Assembly (NCBI GenBank): GCA_964106645.2
Contig: OZ067052.1
Strand: one strand, 5' to 3'
DNA: 64,000 nucleotides
DNA from: Podarcis pityusensis
Lineage: Eukaryota
The translations under genes and the position numbers were made by a program. This document shows positions 12,384 through 55,392 of the stretch, in pieces (within the stretch, counting starts at the first letter, position 1; the number at the start of each line of letters is the position of its first letter). Under the pieces are notes generated by a model, which was given only the letters and a program-made list of their open reading frames with translations, did no database searches and was not told where the DNA came from.

Positions 12384-12546
12384 TGAACGAATTCCTATGC
12401 CCCACAAATAACCCAGAGGTGCATTTTAAATAAAAGGACACATTCTACTAATGTAAAAACATGCTGATTCCTGGACCATCCACTGGCCGGATTGAGAAGG
12501 CGATTGGGCCGGATCCGGCCCCCGGGCCTTAGGTTGCCTACCCCTG
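12298..12546. mobile_element. hAT (Charlie-like) MITE containing a (TAA)n tract
   Basis: Termini CAGAGGTCAGCAACC and GGTTGCCTACCCCTG; 8-bp TSD GACTGGGG / GATTGGGG. Confidence 0.85.
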
Positions 12547-15500
12547 GATTGGGGCAACCTTGGGAGGGCCACATGGTAGATATTGGTAGTATTTCCATCT
12601 TTCTCTCCATGTGCTGCCCTGTTCTGTGATGCCTTCACTTTACTCACAACCTAAGAACACAGGAAACTGCCTTTTATCGTCAGGTCTGCCTGTTTGTGCA
12701 TCTCGTCCAATGCTGTCTGTTATTCTGGCTCTCAATAGGCTCTCATCACACACTACCGGAATCCTTTTAGCTAGAACAAACTATTTTATTCTCTCTGTGT
12801 GTGCACATGTGTGAAAGAATAGAAAAAGGTGATTGAACTGGTTAAAAAAACAAAAACCTTAGAAATTTGCCTGTGTGAAAATAAAGACACTTGCATAGAC
12901 TTCACATCAGGCCCAGGTGTTTCTTGCTTCTGTAAGATATGAATTTTTGTGTGATAAGTTTTTTGCAGGGTCTCTTGAGTTGATCGCCAGTGTGGACGCC
13001 TGTATCACCCTGCCTTCTAAGGCAACCAGGACAGTTCACACATGGGCATATAAATAGAAGCAACAATTCAGCAGCTATTTTTTACCACCGGAACACCCAT
13101 AGAAATTTAGGGAGGCTCTTTTTGTGCTTGTTACCTGACCTGAAGGCATCAGCTGCTGTGGATTTTGGCAAGCCTGCAGCACAGGCAGCGGCAGTGCAAA
13201 CATCCTACGCACTGTTCCAGCCCCAATTCCTAGGAAGTCCATTTTTGGCAGTGGGCAAACTTTTTTGCTTGTACATAATTTTTCCACTAATGGCAGTAGT
13301 TTTGTAGTAGTGCACACAGAATAGGTACGGTTTCATGAACTGTGTATCAGCCAGCGCAGCTGAAATAGCCATCTCATTGAGATGCCTCAGGACATTCAAA
13401 CTTGCAAACCAATATTCTTTTCATGGAGGTGGCCATAAAAGCAGGAGACGATTTACATCTGCAGGCCTTTGCTTTGAAATGGTGGTGGCCTTGTAGCAGT
13501 GTTAATTAGAAACCAAGTGGGGATTTTAATTTGAAGTATTCCTATTTCTTTAGTTATTGCTTGTTGCATCTGATAATTTTGGATTGTGAATGCCTGTGGC
13601 ATAGTTGTGTGTGCTAGGATCCTTACTCTTTTTTCGTATTCTGGTTATAGGAGCATGCAACATTTTCCTGCTTTTCATGGCATGCTGACTTGCACTTCAT
13701 TTGATCTTGTGACAATAAAACCTCCCATTCCTTTCACTTTTGTCTGTGTATAGGCAATATTTTTTACTTACCTGAGAGCAGTCTGCCACCCCCAAGCCAG
13801 TGCCCAGTCATAGCCTCTTAAGAGCATGCCATTTGCACAGTGCTTATTTCATGGACCCAGAGTGCTTGTGTAGTTCAGCTAATCTGTACAGTACCTTTTA
13901 TCTATTGTATAGTACATTAATTACCTAGATAATGAATTATATCTGTTCAAAGCTTCCGCTTGTGCAGGTCCTCAGTGGTGCAGATTGTGGAGCCTTCTAG
14001 GTCCAATACAGATTTAGCACACTCTGTTAACTGTAATTTTACTTTGAAGTTTATTACATGTTTGTCCCACCCTTCTGCCAGGGAATTCAAGGTGGTATAC
14101 TCATTTGGCACCTCCTAATTTTATCCTCATAGGAACCCTGTAGGTTAAAGCTGAGAAATCTTGACTAGCTCTACGTGACCCACGAAGCTTCATGGTCAGC
14201 TAATGATTCACTTGAACCTTTTGGTTCCAGTCTGACAGTAACCACTCTGCTACGTGATTGGGAGCCGGATGTGGCAGACACAGGCCTCTCCATAGAGTGC
14301 ACTTTACCTTCCTTTATTACGGAAGGTACATGGCACCAGCATTGATCAAGGTTTAGGCTAGCCAAGTTTAATTCCTTGTGCAGGATTTGAAGTTTGGTAA
14401 CAAGCCTTGCTTCGGAGGACATTAGGCTAGACTGCACTCTCACTTTTAAAATATAAAAACTATACAGTTCCCTGCAGAGTCTTGGGGATCTAACCTGCAA
14501 ATAGATGATGTAGTAGCAGTCATTTTGGATGATGTCTTTAGGTTTGGAAAGTTTTGCTGATGGCAATATTGAGTAAAGTAGTGGGGGTAAGGAGTATTCT
14601 AGGAAATGATACTTAGAAGATGATATTCAGCACTCATTAACATTGAGATGTGGGTGGCAAATGCTGAACGAGGAAAGCACATGAAAATGCCCTAAAGACC
14701 AGAGCTGAGGTAGAAGGAATGAAAGAAAAATTGTCACTTGCATGGTTTTTGTTTTTTTAAAGGAACAAGAACTAATAGAAAGTTCAAACTACTTGATTTT
14801 TTCCAGGGTAATTTTCTGCTTTCTCCTAAGATTCCCCAGATATAAAGCATTTTCCTTTGCAAAGGAAATTGTTGGAAATTGCTCAGTTAAAATGAGCAAC
14901 TCTGATTTTCCAAAATTAAAGTGGCATTTGCTTCCCATCTTAATACTTCTAATGTATTAGTTAACAGTGGCAAAGGATGTTTTGAAGCAGGAAAGGACTC
15001 TCGGTTGAGGGTCCATCCACGCTTTCCTTTGTGCCGCACTTTCTAGGCACAACTCCAGGATTTCTAGGTCCATGTCCAAGCAGGGGTTTGGGGTTTGGGG
15101 TTTTTTTTGGGGGGGGGTCCCACTCTTTTCCCTAGGAAAACCAGCTGTTTATCACTGAACTGAACTAATTGAACTAATTGAACCATCTATGCCCATTTAA
15201 ACTCTGCGTGTGCAGAAATTCTTGTTTCTGTTTGTTACTGTGGTATATTTTTTGTGTTTTTGTATTGTAAACTTCCCTTTAACCTTTTGATGAAGGGTGC
15301 AACATAACACAACACAACACAACAACAACAACAACAACAACAACATGAGGTCAAAATACAGTGACTGCTGCACACTCCTCCTTCATCTTATAGCATAAGG
15401 TGGACAGTTGCCTGAACAGCTATTGACACCACTCCTCTTTGATTTGGTGAGCCAAGTCTAATGTTAGCTCTTGCGCTGTAGAATAACGTTTGTATATGGG

Positions 15501-30128: not shown

Positions 30129-30171
<43 letters not shown>

Positions 30172-30604
30172 TTCTTCCTCTTCTTCTTCTTCCCAAAATT
30201 CCTTTCTCTTCCCCCACCAATTGGTACATCCCAAAGCTCAAACTTCTATGCACTGCAAAAAAGAAAGCAAAGTCTTTCATGCTAAAACACACACAGACAA
30301 ACCCCCAGCCTTCTTCTCTGTACTGCCTACTCCCTGGGAGGCTCTGGAGCCCTGGCTGCTTGGGGATCTGGCCATGCTCCAAGCGGCTCCAAAAATGCAG
30401 CCTGGTGGTGACACAGAGCTCCTGCAGCAGCAGCAGAGGAGGAGGAACAGCCACAGCAGCCTGCCTTTGGCTGCAGCACACACACTCACTGCCATCTCCA
30501 TCAGCCTGGCTGTGCTGCCCTGGGTGAGGTAGAGGGTATGGAGCTGCAGAGCCACCAAAAACAGCCTCGAGGGCCGCCCATGGGCCCCATGTTGGACTAC
30601 CCTG
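29748..30604. mobile_element. Older non-autonomous hAT element containing (GT)20 at 30131-30170
   Basis: Imperfect TIRs CAAGGAGTTCCAAC and GTTGGACTACCCTG; TSD GCTTACAC / GTTTAAAC (6/8). Confidence 0.6.
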
Positions 30605-31845
30605 GTTTAAACTATGAAGAACGAGAAATGATTGCAAAATTCTTACCTACTGCAGCAGATTTCCACCCTGTCTATTTTTCATGGTCTCCAGCCATGTTCC
30701 TCTTCTGCTCTTACTGCCCTCACTTGTCTGTCTTTTCCTATTATTCCATCTCTTCCTCTTCCCACCCACCCAAAAAAGTATTGTAATTCTCAGTCAGCTT
30801 GGATATGGATATTGAGTTCACATTGGAAGGTATAAAAACTGAACAGGCTTGTGAAGAGTACACAACATACTATACTGTAGACCTATCTCAAGGGTAGAAT
30901 TTGAATCCTTCACATTGTGCTTTATGAATGAGGGGATTACTATGACATGTAGGCTAACGATGGGAGAGAATGGCTAAAGAAGGTAAGGAAAGATGGGAGT
31001 GCTTGACTGAAAGCAAGTCTGGACAAGAAAGGTTCCTGCTTGTAGGATGTGCAAGGCTGGTGCTGACCTCTGATCAAAGAAGCATTTGTATATGACTTCC
31101 AGCTGATCAGAAAGGCAGGCTGGGAGGCCGTGAGGGGCCACAATATAGCAAAAGGGAAAGTTCTATAACTTCTTGGGATCTTTTGAATTGATTAGGAAAT
31201 TTGACTTTCCTGTCTGTACAGTCACTGGTTAAGAAAAAATAAATAAATGCCCATTGTGAAAATTGTATTACAACATGCTGCATATTCAGGAAATACATTA
31301 CTTTGTTTCCCAACTTTATTCTATTTAAATCCAGTTCAGCACACAGATCTCCCTCTCCCCCACCATTGCTTTATGTACACATAGTAAAATCTGCACTAGC
31401 TAACCAGTGAGATGTAAAGGTATAAAGCTAAGGTGGAAAAGAGAGAGAGCCTGGAAAGGGGTTGTAGGGCGGAAGTAGTGGGTGGGGAAGGGGTTAAGTG
31501 CATAAACACTTTGACAACCAAATGTCTCCTGCAAATACCCACCACCACATGAGCAAACTTACTTGACAAAACCAAACCAGTAAATATTACTTGGCAAAGA
31601 CAGATTTGGGAATACAAATTGGCTTGTGTAACATGTAGTTCCTGCCTTAGAAGAGCATCCTCATGCCATGCAATTTCACAAAAACTAGGCAAGGTAGGTT
31701 GCATGTTTTCCCTCATTTTATTCTCATTGGTAATTAAGGCTGTTAATCCAAAGTGAGTTCTTAACTTATCTGAGAACTAGATGCAAACACAATTTGGTCT
31801 CAGACTAACACTTCAGCCCGTGGGCTCCAGAAACTCCCATCTCTG

Positions 31846-32728
31846 GTTGTTTTTTAATAAGATATTTATTAGGATTTTTAAAATATTACAATAAAAAATG
31901 AAAAAGAAAAAAATACAAAATAAAAATGATTAAAAACCACTCAATTTTTCCATTGCTTATTTTTCCTTAGCTTGTTTCCCGGACCTCCTCATACCTCCCT
32001 TTTTTGTATTCCAGTTCAGTTTGTTGGTTCAGCAAATCCTTACCCTCTTTATTTATCCTAATCTTTGGTCTTAAAATAGTAACTTTAGATTTTTACCTCT
32101 TAACAACCCATTTTTCATATTCCCTTAAAGCATTACAGCTGGAAACCACTTAATTTCTATCCAACATCGTTCTAACATTCATTAATTTTACAATATTTCT
32201 GTAGATAATCTTTGAACTTCTTCCAGTCTTCTTCCACCGACTCTTCTCCCCGGTCTCGGATTCTGCCAGTCATTTCTGCCAGTTCCATATAGTCCATCAG
32301 CTTCATCTGCCATTCTTCCAGAGTGGGTAAATCTTGTGTCTTCCAGTACTTTGCAATGAGTATTCTTGCTGCTGTTGTGGCATACATAAAAAAAGTTCTA
32401 TCCTTCTTTGGCACCAATTGACCGACTATGCCTAGGAGAAAGGCCTCTGGTTTCTTCAGGAAGGTATATTTAAATACCTTTTTCAGTTCATTATATATCA
32501 TTTTCCAGAAAGCCTTAATCCTTGGGCACGTCCACCAAAGGTGAAAGAATGTACCTTCAGTTTCTTTACATTTCCAACATTTGTTATCGGGCAAATGATA
32601 AATTTTTGCAGGCTTGACTGGGGTCATGTACCACCTGTATATCATTTTCATAATATTCTCTCTTAAGGCATTACATGCCGTAAACTTCATACTTGTGGTC
32701 CATAACTGTTCCCAGTCAGCCATCATAT
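31846..32728 (-). mobile_element. 5'-truncated L1-clade LINE (ORF2 C-terminus and 3' UTR)
   Basis: ORF 32172..32726 with cysteine-rich CWKC...HLWWTC motif; AATAAA and A-rich tail; 18-bp TSD CAGAAACTCCCATCTCTG at 31828-31845 and 32778-32795. Confidence 0.92.
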
Positions 32729-32780
32729 GATGGAATAGGGGCTTGCTCCATCCACTCCATGCATCGACCTGGTATTGCAG
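32729..32780 (+). pseudogene. U2 snRNA internal fragment (3'-domain portion) inside the L1 TSDs
   Basis: GATGGAATAGGGGCTTGCTCCATCCACTCCATGCATCGACCTGGTATTGCAG differs at about 3 of 52 positions from vertebrate U2 as I recall it. Confidence 0.88.
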
Positions 32781-34040
32781 AAACTCCCATCTCTGAAACA
32801 GTTCTGGAAGCCAAACTCATTTCCGATCCCCTCACTTTTGCCCTTTTATAGTTTGGCAAGTTGAGTGCAGTTACAACCTGCATTTTAAAGCCACCACCCC
32901 TTCACATTCCACTTTAGGGTTCATCTGGATCATTTCTCTTCCTCTGCTTCCTGTATGTGAAATGCGAAGCCAAGGAGGAGCCAATGAGAGTAAATGCATA
33001 TGTGATGCTACAACATTTTTTAAAGAGCCCCAGGACCCATCTGAGCATTAATGAGAGGCACCATCGGCATTCAGGCTTGTGCTCTTCCCCTCTTTCTGAT
33101 TTTGGAATGCTCTGATAATGTTTCTAGATTAATGAAAACTGTCTTGGGATTCTTTCACTTGTTTCCTGTTAGGTATTGCTTTCCCAAAGGAGATCATCCT
33201 CCCTAGCCTCTCCCAGACTTGCCTTGACCTAGAAATGGGCTTTGATTCTAACAGCTGCATTTCATTACTCCCTTCAGTGGTGGTCCTTACAATTTATTAG
33301 CTAAAGACATGGATAAATTCAATCCACGCAATTATCGTTAGCGGCAATATATTACAATCAGAGTCATGTGCAGCATAAAACACCTTATTCTCTAGTGTAG
33401 CCGTACGAAGCTCCAGGAGGTGTTTGGCGCCTCTGATGAGACTAATCGCTTCTCTTCAAAAGCAGCAACTGACTCAAGGGGGCAGGCACATCTTCCCGAG
33501 GTTACTAGGATCAGAAGTTGTATTTTCTTTGTTTTTCCTAGATAATACAGTCCCTTGGTGTGGAATTACTGAGGGTTAATTTCAGTTCATTTAAAATTTT
33601 AAGTGAGAATGTTGTGTTCTTCCCTGTGTGGGTTGAGCAGAGTAGAAGGCTGGAAAATTCACCCCAGATCCAATTCAGTCAAAAGTCACCTCTCTTCTGG
33701 CTCATACAGCATCCTCCCAGCTCCTCCCTTGCCCCAGGATGGGATTGGTCAAGTGTACAGTGCACTAGCTATGGTGGATAACACAGTTTGTGCTTTGAAC
33801 AATGCAAGAAGCTCGGATGTTTGCATTCTGCACCTCATTCACACAGTAGCCTCCTTCAGGTGATGTAAAAGTGAGCTCCCTCAATACATGAGTGGGAGCC
33901 ATGAGGGTGAGCGCAGGAGTTCATCTCTTTGTGTTACTCTCCATAAAGGTGAATATATGAAATGAGGAGCCCTCTTTGCTCCCCTCTGCACTTTAGAGCT
34001 CTGCCTCCCCCCCCCCTTGCATGTTGAACAAACTCCCTTT

Positions 34041-34180
34041 TAGAATCACAGAATGATAGCGCTGGAAGGGGCCACAAGGGTCATCTAGTCCAACCCCCTG
34101 CAATTCAGGAATCTTTTGCCAACGTGGGGCTCGAACCCACAACCCTGAGATTAAGAGTCTCATGCTCTACCCACTGAGCT
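34041..34180 (-). mobile_element. SINE with tRNA-Lys(CTT)-derived head and CR1-derived 3' tail
   Basis: Minus strand AGCTCAGTGGGTAGAGCATGAGACTCTTAATCTCAGGGTTGTGGGTTCGAGCCCCACGTTGG (34118-34180), then a CR1-like end; a decayed relative lies at about 3787-3885. Confidence 0.85.
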
Positions 34181-50712: not shown

Positions 50713-53003
50713 GTACTGAGCCAAGAGGGAAGGGGGCTCATAGGCTCACGGTCAGAGAGGATTCGGAGGTTTTGCAGGTGCAGGGTAACATTTTACTGGT
50801 TGTCCTGGGACTCTTTTCACAAAGTTGCATGTGCTTATCCACAGGTAATACAAAGGGAGAGTTAGTGCCATTCCATTAGGAGTGGTCAGAAGATATCTCT
50901 GAGGTGTTTGTTCTTTTGGTTTCTTTAATATTTAGTTTTGAGCTGGAATTTGGATGGATTCAACCAACAATCTAGAGCGTTCTGGTGTGTTTTAGTGTGA
51001 ATAGCTTACCTACAGAGAAATCTAGTTTTCACACAGAAGATACATTTGGATGCAATACCGGCCCCAAACCATCATCAGGGCAACTAGCCTTTGCCTGAGC
51101 TATCACAGAGCAGCTGACTTAGCACTAGCATGCGACCCAGCACTCGTGGTTTGAGAATCCAATAACAAACTTTGGTTTCCACTTGTGGTTTATTTGGAGA
51201 AAAGCAAGCCACACAAACAGGTTCACATGTAACCCTAAGCCAGCTTCTCCGTGGTTTGTTTCCCTGCTCTGGAAAGCGATGAGCAAAACGAGTGTTTGAG
51301 TTACAGGCACCTACCTGCACACAGCTTGTGCAGAGGCTAATTCCGTGGCCAGTGTTGTATACGAATGAGGCCAATATCTTCATTTAAAAGAAAAGCAATC
51401 ATTTGTAGGATGATCTTTAGAACTGCATATGTCCATTAGGTGCTCAGCTCCCATTTGTATCTTGGCTGCTGTTGTTGCAGCCGCAAGTGACTTTTCCATT
51501 TCACATTTCTGCCACCCTTCCTGCAGGAGTGACTCCTTTGCCTCTAAATATCCTGCAAGTGTATGTACACAGTTCAGAGTTGTAGGCACACATCACAGAA
51601 TGGCTTCCAAATTCCCTTCAGTACTTTTTTGTATGAAATAATCCAGCAAGATTTGTTGAGATCTTGAGATGTCTTATGAGATGACTCCTGTGTCAAACAG
51701 GAATATTGAAAAGGGCCATTAATCTGTTTTGAAAGTGGGGCTAAGACTAAAGTAAAAAGGTCTTCCGGTAAGCTGGTCTTAAGCTGGTGTTAAGAGAATT
51801 GTATTTAGGATGGCAGTTTTAGTTTCCTAACTCACTAAGCGCTACTTTGCATTTGGTGTGGCAGTTGTGTTTGCTGCGGCTGTATTGGCATCCTGGAGAA
51901 GATAGGATGTACACCCCTAAACTCTCCCTAGGGAGCTGCAGCCAGTTCCTAGGCGCTTAAATGGAAGCGCTCACATTTCACACTTTGAAGTTTCTTGCAG
52001 TAAACTGGTGGGGCATCAGGGCTGAATGGATTGCCATATAAATGATGAAGCAGCTCTGAATCTAATGTTGCTAACCCACTTTCCTATGTATGCTGGAGCC
52101 TCTTAAGAGATTGGCTTTCATTGAAGAATGCAAATTCTTAATAACTCTATAAATTGGGCATTGTGTTAAAGAATTACCATATCAACATTAAGAAAGGAGA
52201 ATTCAAGCTTTATAGTAAAGAAGCTTAGAATGCTGTGTATGCATGCATAAAACTAAGGATGTGCGAAAGTGAGCTCCGTTGTCTTGATGACTAAGCAGGG
52301 AGGGTTCTCCCCCTCCCCCTGGAATTTCAAGTAGGGCTGTGCCAAGAGGGAAGGGGGGGCACCGTTTTCACAAACATTTTCATCTGTATCAGAAGGCACA
52401 TGTGTGCGCACACATACGCTCCCCACTCCCCCCCCCCCCCGGTGTCTTTAGGCAATAGGCAGTACAATGAGTTATTTTGCCATCATAGTCCTGATTGGCT
52501 TGGGATCGCCCTTGAGCCCAGTTTAGGAAGCATGGCCATTCTAAATTAACTTTGTCCTATTGATGTCAGCATATAAACAGATCTGACTGGCTGTGTAACA
52601 TTGTGATGTGGTTATGTTCAATATGTGATCCCTGACTGGCTAAGACAAAGAAGCCCTAATCAACAAAGGATATGAGCATTAGGTCAGGTGAACATTAACA
52701 AGAAGGCAAACCATTCTCGACAGTAAGTGATTTTATTGGAAAATATTTTGGAAGACCTTAAAGCACTACCTTCATCCTAAAAATGGAAAGAAGCAAATAT
52801 TTGGTCCAACCATGTTTGCTCCTATGCATCTTCCCTCTCTAAGGGCTGAGGGCCATTTCATATGCTAAGGATTAAAAGGACCTTGCTTGGCTAAACTACA
52901 TTTGGTACTGAACATGGGAGAATAGTCTCACCAACTGTTGAGGAGGAGGTGAAGGATAACACTTTGTGGTCCTCTTCTTCCACTACCTTTTCTGTTCCCC
53001 CAG

Positions 53004-55008: not shown

Positions 55009-55392
55009 CTGTATATACTCGAGTATAAGCCAACTTTTTCAGCACATTTTTTATGCTGAAAAAGCCCCCCTCGGCTTATACTCAAGTGAGGGTCCCTGTC
55101 GGCAGCAGTGGAGGAGGAACGAGCAGCTCGAAAGCAGCCCTTTGGGGCTGCTTGTTCTTCCTCCGCCACTGCCGCCACCAGCCTCTGCCTCTCGGCAGCA
55201 CCCTACGTGGGAGGGCTGGGGGGGAGAGAGAAACCCCCTCTGGCGTGGGCGCATGCGCACCCCCCCCCCCACACACACTCCGGCCACCAGGAGGTTTGTG
55301 GTGTGGTGAACCGGCTTATACTCGAGTCAATAAGTTTTCCCTGTTTTTTGTGGTAAAATTAGGTGCCTCGGCTTATACTCGAGTATATACGG
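55009..55392. mobile_element. Tc1/mariner MITE with GC-rich interior
   Basis: TA TSD; TIR C(T/C)GTATATACTCGAGTATAAGCC; internal GGCTTATACTC repeats. Confidence 0.9.

Follow-up and report, generated by a model that had tools for sequence, protein, structure and literature searches.

How could an L1 retrotransposon and a piece of U2 small nuclear RNA (snRNA), lying in opposite orientations, come to share one insertion site? The question is raised by a locus in the lizard Podarcis pityusensis (assembly GCA_964106645.2, contig OZ067052.1), of which a stretch of 64,000 nucleotides, referred to below as the window, was analyzed computationally. At 31828-32795 a target-site duplication (TSD) encloses a minus-strand, 5'-truncated L1 and about 50 nt of plus-strand sequence from an internal part of U2. 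The original prediction, made by a model from the sequence alone, had read this composite as the product of two different RNAs copied from the two nicks of one insertion. The composite was confirmed as a real feature; it is a reptile example of a chimera type that has already been published for human, together with the proposed mechanism. It probably results from a single act of L1 retrotransposition that copied two RNAs into DNA, one from each end of a staggered break.

Structure of the insertion

The 18-mer CAGAAACTCCCATCTCTG was found at both outer ends of the composite of L1 and U2 (Table 1). Its two copies were identical at 18 of 18 positions by sequence reading, with a repeat finder and by local BLAST, and the bases immediately beyond them were unlike each other on both sides. 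By our own arithmetic, a chance repeat of 18 nt has an expectation of about 1e-5, given the roughly 7e5 position pairs in 1.2 kb. The repeat finder and local BLAST revealed no flanking repeats specific to either of the inner parts, the L1 or the U2 fragment; the 18/18 repeat stands only at the outer ends, and one TSD surrounds both parts, in agreement with what had been predicted. The U2 part lies at the 5' end of the L1 in the opposite orientation (U2 plus, L1 minus) and adjoins the right TSD copy.

The ends of the duplicated sequence are also reverse complementary to each other, with CAGA at the start and TCTG at the end of 31828-31845. Both nicks, as placed below, are preceded by TCTG on their own strands, which may be due to chance (about 1/256) or to a preference of this L1 endonuclease.

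Words sampled from 31000-33600 were present at a share of 0.86-0.89 in sequencing runs of the best-matching organism, which came from two separate studies, and at a share of 0.51-0.67 in runs of four other organisms; the flanks make up 63% of this stretch. Those four relatives might be without the insertion, although a divergence of about 2% would yield equal word shares.

L1 part and its breakpoint

On the minus strand, a reading frame that begins at 32726 runs through 186 codons without interruption to a TAG. Its translation gave 3992 protein matches at an expectation value (E) of up to 0.001 in a representative library, the top two being fragments of ORF2 from Podarcis muralis with 78-81% identity. 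A word-index protein search added fragments from Podarcis lilfordi, none of which was closer than those from P. muralis. Human LINE-1 ORF2p was matched at residues 1094-1235 of 1275 (E 1.4e-11), and the longer relatives carry an APE endonuclease domain and a reverse transcriptase (RT) domain (Exo_endo_phos, RVT_1). On the basis of the homology to the human protein and of these domains in the relatives, the translation was therefore taken to be the C terminus of ORF2 from an element of the L1 clade. A Pfam search of the ORF2 C-terminal fragment returned no match, and no second copy of this L1 family was found within the 64-kb window. The 5'-truncated, minus-strand L1 of the original prediction was thus borne out by its open ORF2 end, 3' untranslated region (3'UTR), AATAAA and A-rich tail set against the left TSD copy. 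With its frame still open and its TSD perfect, the insertion looks fairly recent.

In about 40 relatives a conserved motif, MIKWA-x-DIG-xx-I, is located just upstream of the position of MMADWEQLW in the window, where the motif is absent. The methionine pair of MMADWEQLW is also found in some of the relatives (P0100, P0051), and the codon preceding it specifies Ile, Val or Leu in nearly all relatives and His in the window. Judged from the absent motif and the codon mismatch, the L1 similarity ends at 32726 +/- 1 nt. Several of the protein matches begin at query residues 8-11, within the translation of the U2-derived segment; these starts were read as alignment overhang, residues 8-18 being without identity to the closest relatives when compared by eye. 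The possibility that the inverted segment is itself part of the L1 was ruled out by the absence of the conserved upstream L1 motif in the comparison with about 40 relatives.

U2 fragment

When 32729-32790 was searched alone, U2 (RF00004) was the best of 4227 Rfam families, on the plus strand and at model positions 116-176. Rfam scans of longer sequences (5 kb, 141 nt and the whole window) did not report U2, as expected under a glocal model for an internal fragment of only a quarter of the full length. According to the Rfam consensus structure the fragment starts 3 nt into the basal stem of stem-loop III and continues through the first (5') half of stem-loop IV as far as the loop. In an ungapped alignment 37 of 51 columns agreed with the pan-eukaryotic consensus up to CA, and all invariant consensus positions within the range of the fragment were matched; beyond CA only 4 of 10 columns agreed. 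The similarity to U2 thus breaks off where the right TSD copy begins, at model position ~167 of 192, which leaves the fragment 3'-truncated, with CA(G) common to U2 and the TSD. These results uphold the claim of about 50 nt of internal, plus-strand U2 antisense to the L1 (RF00004 as best family, model positions 116 to ~167).

It had also been claimed that the U2 match extends for 3 nt (CAG) into the TSD. This held for CA, which occupies conserved consensus positions, and less clearly for G, which occupies a variable one. The CAG, with which the fragment ends and the right TSD copy begins, is located within the terminal hairpin loop of stem-loop IV in the consensus structure line.

Relative to vertebrate U2 the fragment is presumably identical at 49 of 52 positions (about nt 115-166), and two of the three differences are what we take to be CpG transitions. 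From CAG onward the TSD presumably matches U2 at 8 of 10 bases; if so, the primer pairing discussed below could be longer than 3 bp.

Palindromic joint

The joint between L1 and U2 is a perfect palindrome of 14 bp, as originally described, and its center, between 32726 and 32727, falls exactly at the L1 breakpoint. Judged from the protein comparison, native L1 sequence makes up the left arm; the right arm consists of two orphan bases followed by 5 bases from the start of the U2 match. GAUGG is present in both RNAs at the points where copying stopped, so that the ends of the two complementary DNAs (cDNAs) are identical. The window contains 13 perfect palindromes whose arms are at least 7 nt long, compared with 4.5 +/- 2 in Markov simulations (about threefold), and the probability of a given joint lying within such a palindrome is about 0.1-0.3%, for what is a post hoc observation.

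The palindrome may be a record of the head-to-head joining of two independent cDNAs. The L1 cDNA might, for example, undergo a short fold-back or template jump at its end and so acquire the GATGG required for pairing with the terminus of the U2 cDNA. Three origins of the palindrome were weighed and none was established: folding back of the L1 cDNA terminus, a switch of the U2 cDNA to the L1 RNA as template, and chance. A zero-loop hairpin was rejected as the source of the palindrome because it looks sterically unlikely.

Elsewhere in the window one perfect 14-bp palindrome, TATACTCGAGTATA, was found in identical form at 55014-55027 and 55374-55387, 360 bp apart, as if a single repeat were present in two copies. 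Further perfect palindromes with arms of 8-9 nt were located at 12506-12521, 14851-14868 and 52400-52415.

Table 1. Parts of the L1/U2 insertion, with positions in the window.
Feature	Position	Strand	Remarks
Left TSD copy	31828-31845	no strand	18/18 identical to 32778-32795; bases outside differ
L1 3'UTR and tail	31846-32170	minus	AATAAA followed after 9 nt by A-rich tail AAAAAACAAC, which adjoins left TSD copy
5'-truncated L1 ORF2, C-terminal segment	32171-32726	minus	185 codons and stop; open; CCHC motif
Perfect 14-bp palindrome CCATCATATGATGG	32720-32733	no strand	L1/U2 joint
Two bases, AT	32727-32728	no strand	neither L1 (codon mismatch) nor U2 (alignment starts at 32729)
Internal U2 snRNA fragment	32729-32780	plus	RF00004 model positions ~116-167; truncated at both ends; antisense to L1
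Right TSD copy	32778-32795	no strand	18/18 identical to 31828-31845

Origin of the composite

With reasonable though far from full confidence, the composite is classed as an inverted snRNA/L1 chimera of the twin-priming type. The L1 endonuclease would nick the plus strand after ...CTCTG (site CTCTG/AA), and the 3'-OH after the ...CTCTG of the left TSD copy would prime L1 cDNA synthesis from the short A-rich tail. This cDNA, now the plus strand, would extend from 31846 rightwards and halt within ORF2 at 32726. Cutting of the minus strand 18 nt away would produce a 3'-OH ending in ...TTTCTG, the minus-strand 3' end of the right TSD copy. Its ...CTG would anneal to the CAG of the loop that caps stem-loop IV of U2 and be extended by about 49 nt through stem-loop III, halting 3 nt before the base of the stem. 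Head-to-head joining of the two cDNA ends, with the addition of two bases, would then produce the palindromic joint, and filling in of the 18-nt stagger would give the TSD. To the directly observed TSD, orientations, extents of L1 and U2 similarity and loop position of CAG, this scheme would add an order of nicks, priming instead of capture, and a manner of joining the ends. The scheme is compatible with every junction and is the best explanation, partly supported by the data; the CA(G) overlap at the start of the TSD fits priming, being a primer/template overlap of 2-3 nt.

Several observations weigh against twin priming on U2. At the first-strand site, CTCTG/AA, the resemblance to TTTT/AA is poor, with AA present and the upstream bases only pyrimidine-rich, and the site in the orientation of U2 (TTCTG/GA) is about as poor. 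TTTT/AA is the preference of human L1, and may not be that of lizard L1. The U2 match scored 14.9 bits (E 0.15), far under the gathering score of 46, as expected for a fragment a quarter of the length of U2; the Rfam search intended as a check on the original prediction favored U2 among families at a score well short of the threshold. The U2 copy begins at model position 116, without the 5' end of U2, and the U5, 5S and transfer RNA (tRNA) fragments in a survey of mammalian chimeras usually start from nt 1 where the U2 fragment here starts from ~nt 115 (PMC13174262). Finally, had a chimeric RNA been copied and the end of its cDNA been joined to the target by microhomology, the CAG overlap would be expected just as much. 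Because both predict this microhomology, the local sequence does not separate twin priming from retrotransposition of a chimeric transcript. Of the proposal that two RNAs were copied from the two nicks of one insertion, the geometry stands, fitting all junctions; the CAG is no longer distinctive, being predicted by a chimeric transcript as well.

A chimeric transcript could have had its source in an older truncated L1 beside an antisense U2, from which a read-through transcript was retrotransposed in trans and 5'-truncated at CAG. All of the local sequence is compatible with such a two-step origin, and microhomology at the 5' junction is usual in truncated L1 insertions. It is nevertheless quite unlikely: two rare events are required together with trans-mobilization of an RNA without functional ORF2, and the initial joint would remain unexplained. 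If a U2-targeting long interspersed element (LINE) is invoked in this two-step origin, the position in U2 is wrong (nt 38/39 as against ~115) and the 3' flank is not U2. The joint itself is compatible with capture through end joining, with U2 cDNA, or repair synthesis templated by U2 RNA, filling a gap at the 5' junction of the L1. The two orphan bases and the perfect palindrome resemble end processing or templated filler, and U2 was copied only in part (~nt 115-166). Such capture involves no priming by the second-strand 3'-OH and leaves the orientation to chance. We consider it unlikely, since the end of U2 lies exactly at the 2-3 nt overlap with the TSD and in a single-stranded loop, as fits priming, and since random orientation is at odds with the antisense bias published for several small RNAs (PMC13174262).

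The low Rfam score, together with the report of U2 only for the fragment alone, would be expected if the 50-nt segment were unrelated filler or a U2-like part of another repeat. This is very improbable in view of the rank of U2 at the top of the 4227 families, the 37 of 51 ungapped matches and the agreement at all invariant positions; short interspersed elements (SINEs) with U2-derived parts are, moreover, reported only from crocodilians and use other parts of U2. Least credible are separate insertions of the L1 and the U2 fragment, a repeat that arose by chance, and an error of assembly. No repeats flank either part individually, the 18/18 repeat is placed at the exact outer ends of the composite where chance would supply one at about 1e-5, and the runs of the best-matching organism from two separate studies hold 86-89% of the words sampled from 31000-33600.

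Comparison with known chimeras

In the classical inversion of L1 by twin priming, reportedly described by Ostertag and Kazazian in 2001, both cDNAs are said to be copied from the same L1 RNA. The present composite would share with it the reverse transcriptions from both ends of a staggered break and the head-to-head joining, and differs in that the inverted segment is not L1, as indicated by the absence of the conserved motif.

The original prediction had placed inverted snRNA/L1 chimeras outside the known background. This premise was incorrect; such chimeras have been published together with a twin-priming model (PMC4476161). Doucet et al. (2015, Mol Biol Evol; PMC4476161) described seven human snRNA chimeras with 3'-truncated snRNA inverted relative to L1 or SVA, each with one TSD and with homology at the junction, and proposed twin priming on the snRNA. 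Inverted U1, U2, U5 and U6/L1 chimeras formed part of their 'Group IV', the U5 cases were truncated in a single-stranded loop, and Anolis was screened by these authors for U6 alone (PMC4476161). In the human U2/L1 case (Supplemental Table 1) the L1 was 1457 nt long, the TSD 14, the truncation at U2 nt 55, the junction homology 2 and the site CTTTT-AA (PMC4476161).

The lizard composite agrees with these chimeras in its single TSD, its 5'-truncated L1 and the inverted, 3'-truncated snRNA at the L1 5' end, and also in the few nt shared between snRNA and target (1-4 nt in the human chimeras) and in the truncation within a single-stranded loop (PMC4476161). It differs from the human U2 case in its lizard host with its own L1 lineage, its TSD of 18 bp, its weaker endonuclease site and the position of initiation, which would be ~nt 166, in the loop of stem-loop IV, as against nt 55 (PMC4476161). 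Relative to all of these chimeras the U2 fragment is internal, ending at ~nt 115, and the joint is palindromic (PMC4476161). The internal U2 fragment that does not reach the 5' end and the palindromic joint are what make this composite unusual among published cases.

A 2026 survey in Cell Genomics reported an antisense bias of 5S ribosomal RNA, tRNA and U5/LINE-1 chimeras in mammals and invoked twin priming (PMC13174262). As in that survey, the small RNA here is antisense to the L1, truncated at a loop and contained within TSDs (PMC13174262). A text search of the survey found no occurrence of 'U2 snRNA' or 'RNU2' (PMC13174262). The U6/L1 chimeras attributed to template switching or RNA ligation (Buzdin 2002/2003; Garcia-Perez 2007; PMC6789731) likewise combine an snRNA and a 5'-truncated L1 in one TSD. 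In those, full-length U6 is co-oriented with the L1, in contrast to the partial, antisense snRNA found here (PMC6789731).

Two other known systems that involve U2 were considered. The U2-targeting LINEs Keno and Utopia insert at U2 nt 38/39 and have U2 on both flanks; a LINE of this type was ruled out by the extent of the fragment (~nt 115-166) and by the 3' flank, which is not U2. A SINE with a U2-derived head was ruled out as well, SINEU being found only in crocodilians and using other parts of U2.

If the scheme is correct, twin priming on a cellular snRNA, which was proposed from few human cases, would also occur in a distantly related L1 lineage of reptiles, and the present locus would add a case with initiation at the loop of U2 stem-loop IV and an incomplete copy. 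Alone it is an anecdote. Young L1 insertions with sharp junctions are plentiful in lizards, and lizard cases in numbers could tell which RNAs lie close to the integration complex, at what sites priming begins and how cDNAs are joined.

Other features of the window

A long (GT)n microsatellite at 30140-30180 yields a spurious match to SCARNA7. On the minus strand, 34124-34180 matched part of the tRNA model (47.3 bits, positions 9-63 of 71) and probably represents a tRNA-derived SINE head, not a tRNA gene.

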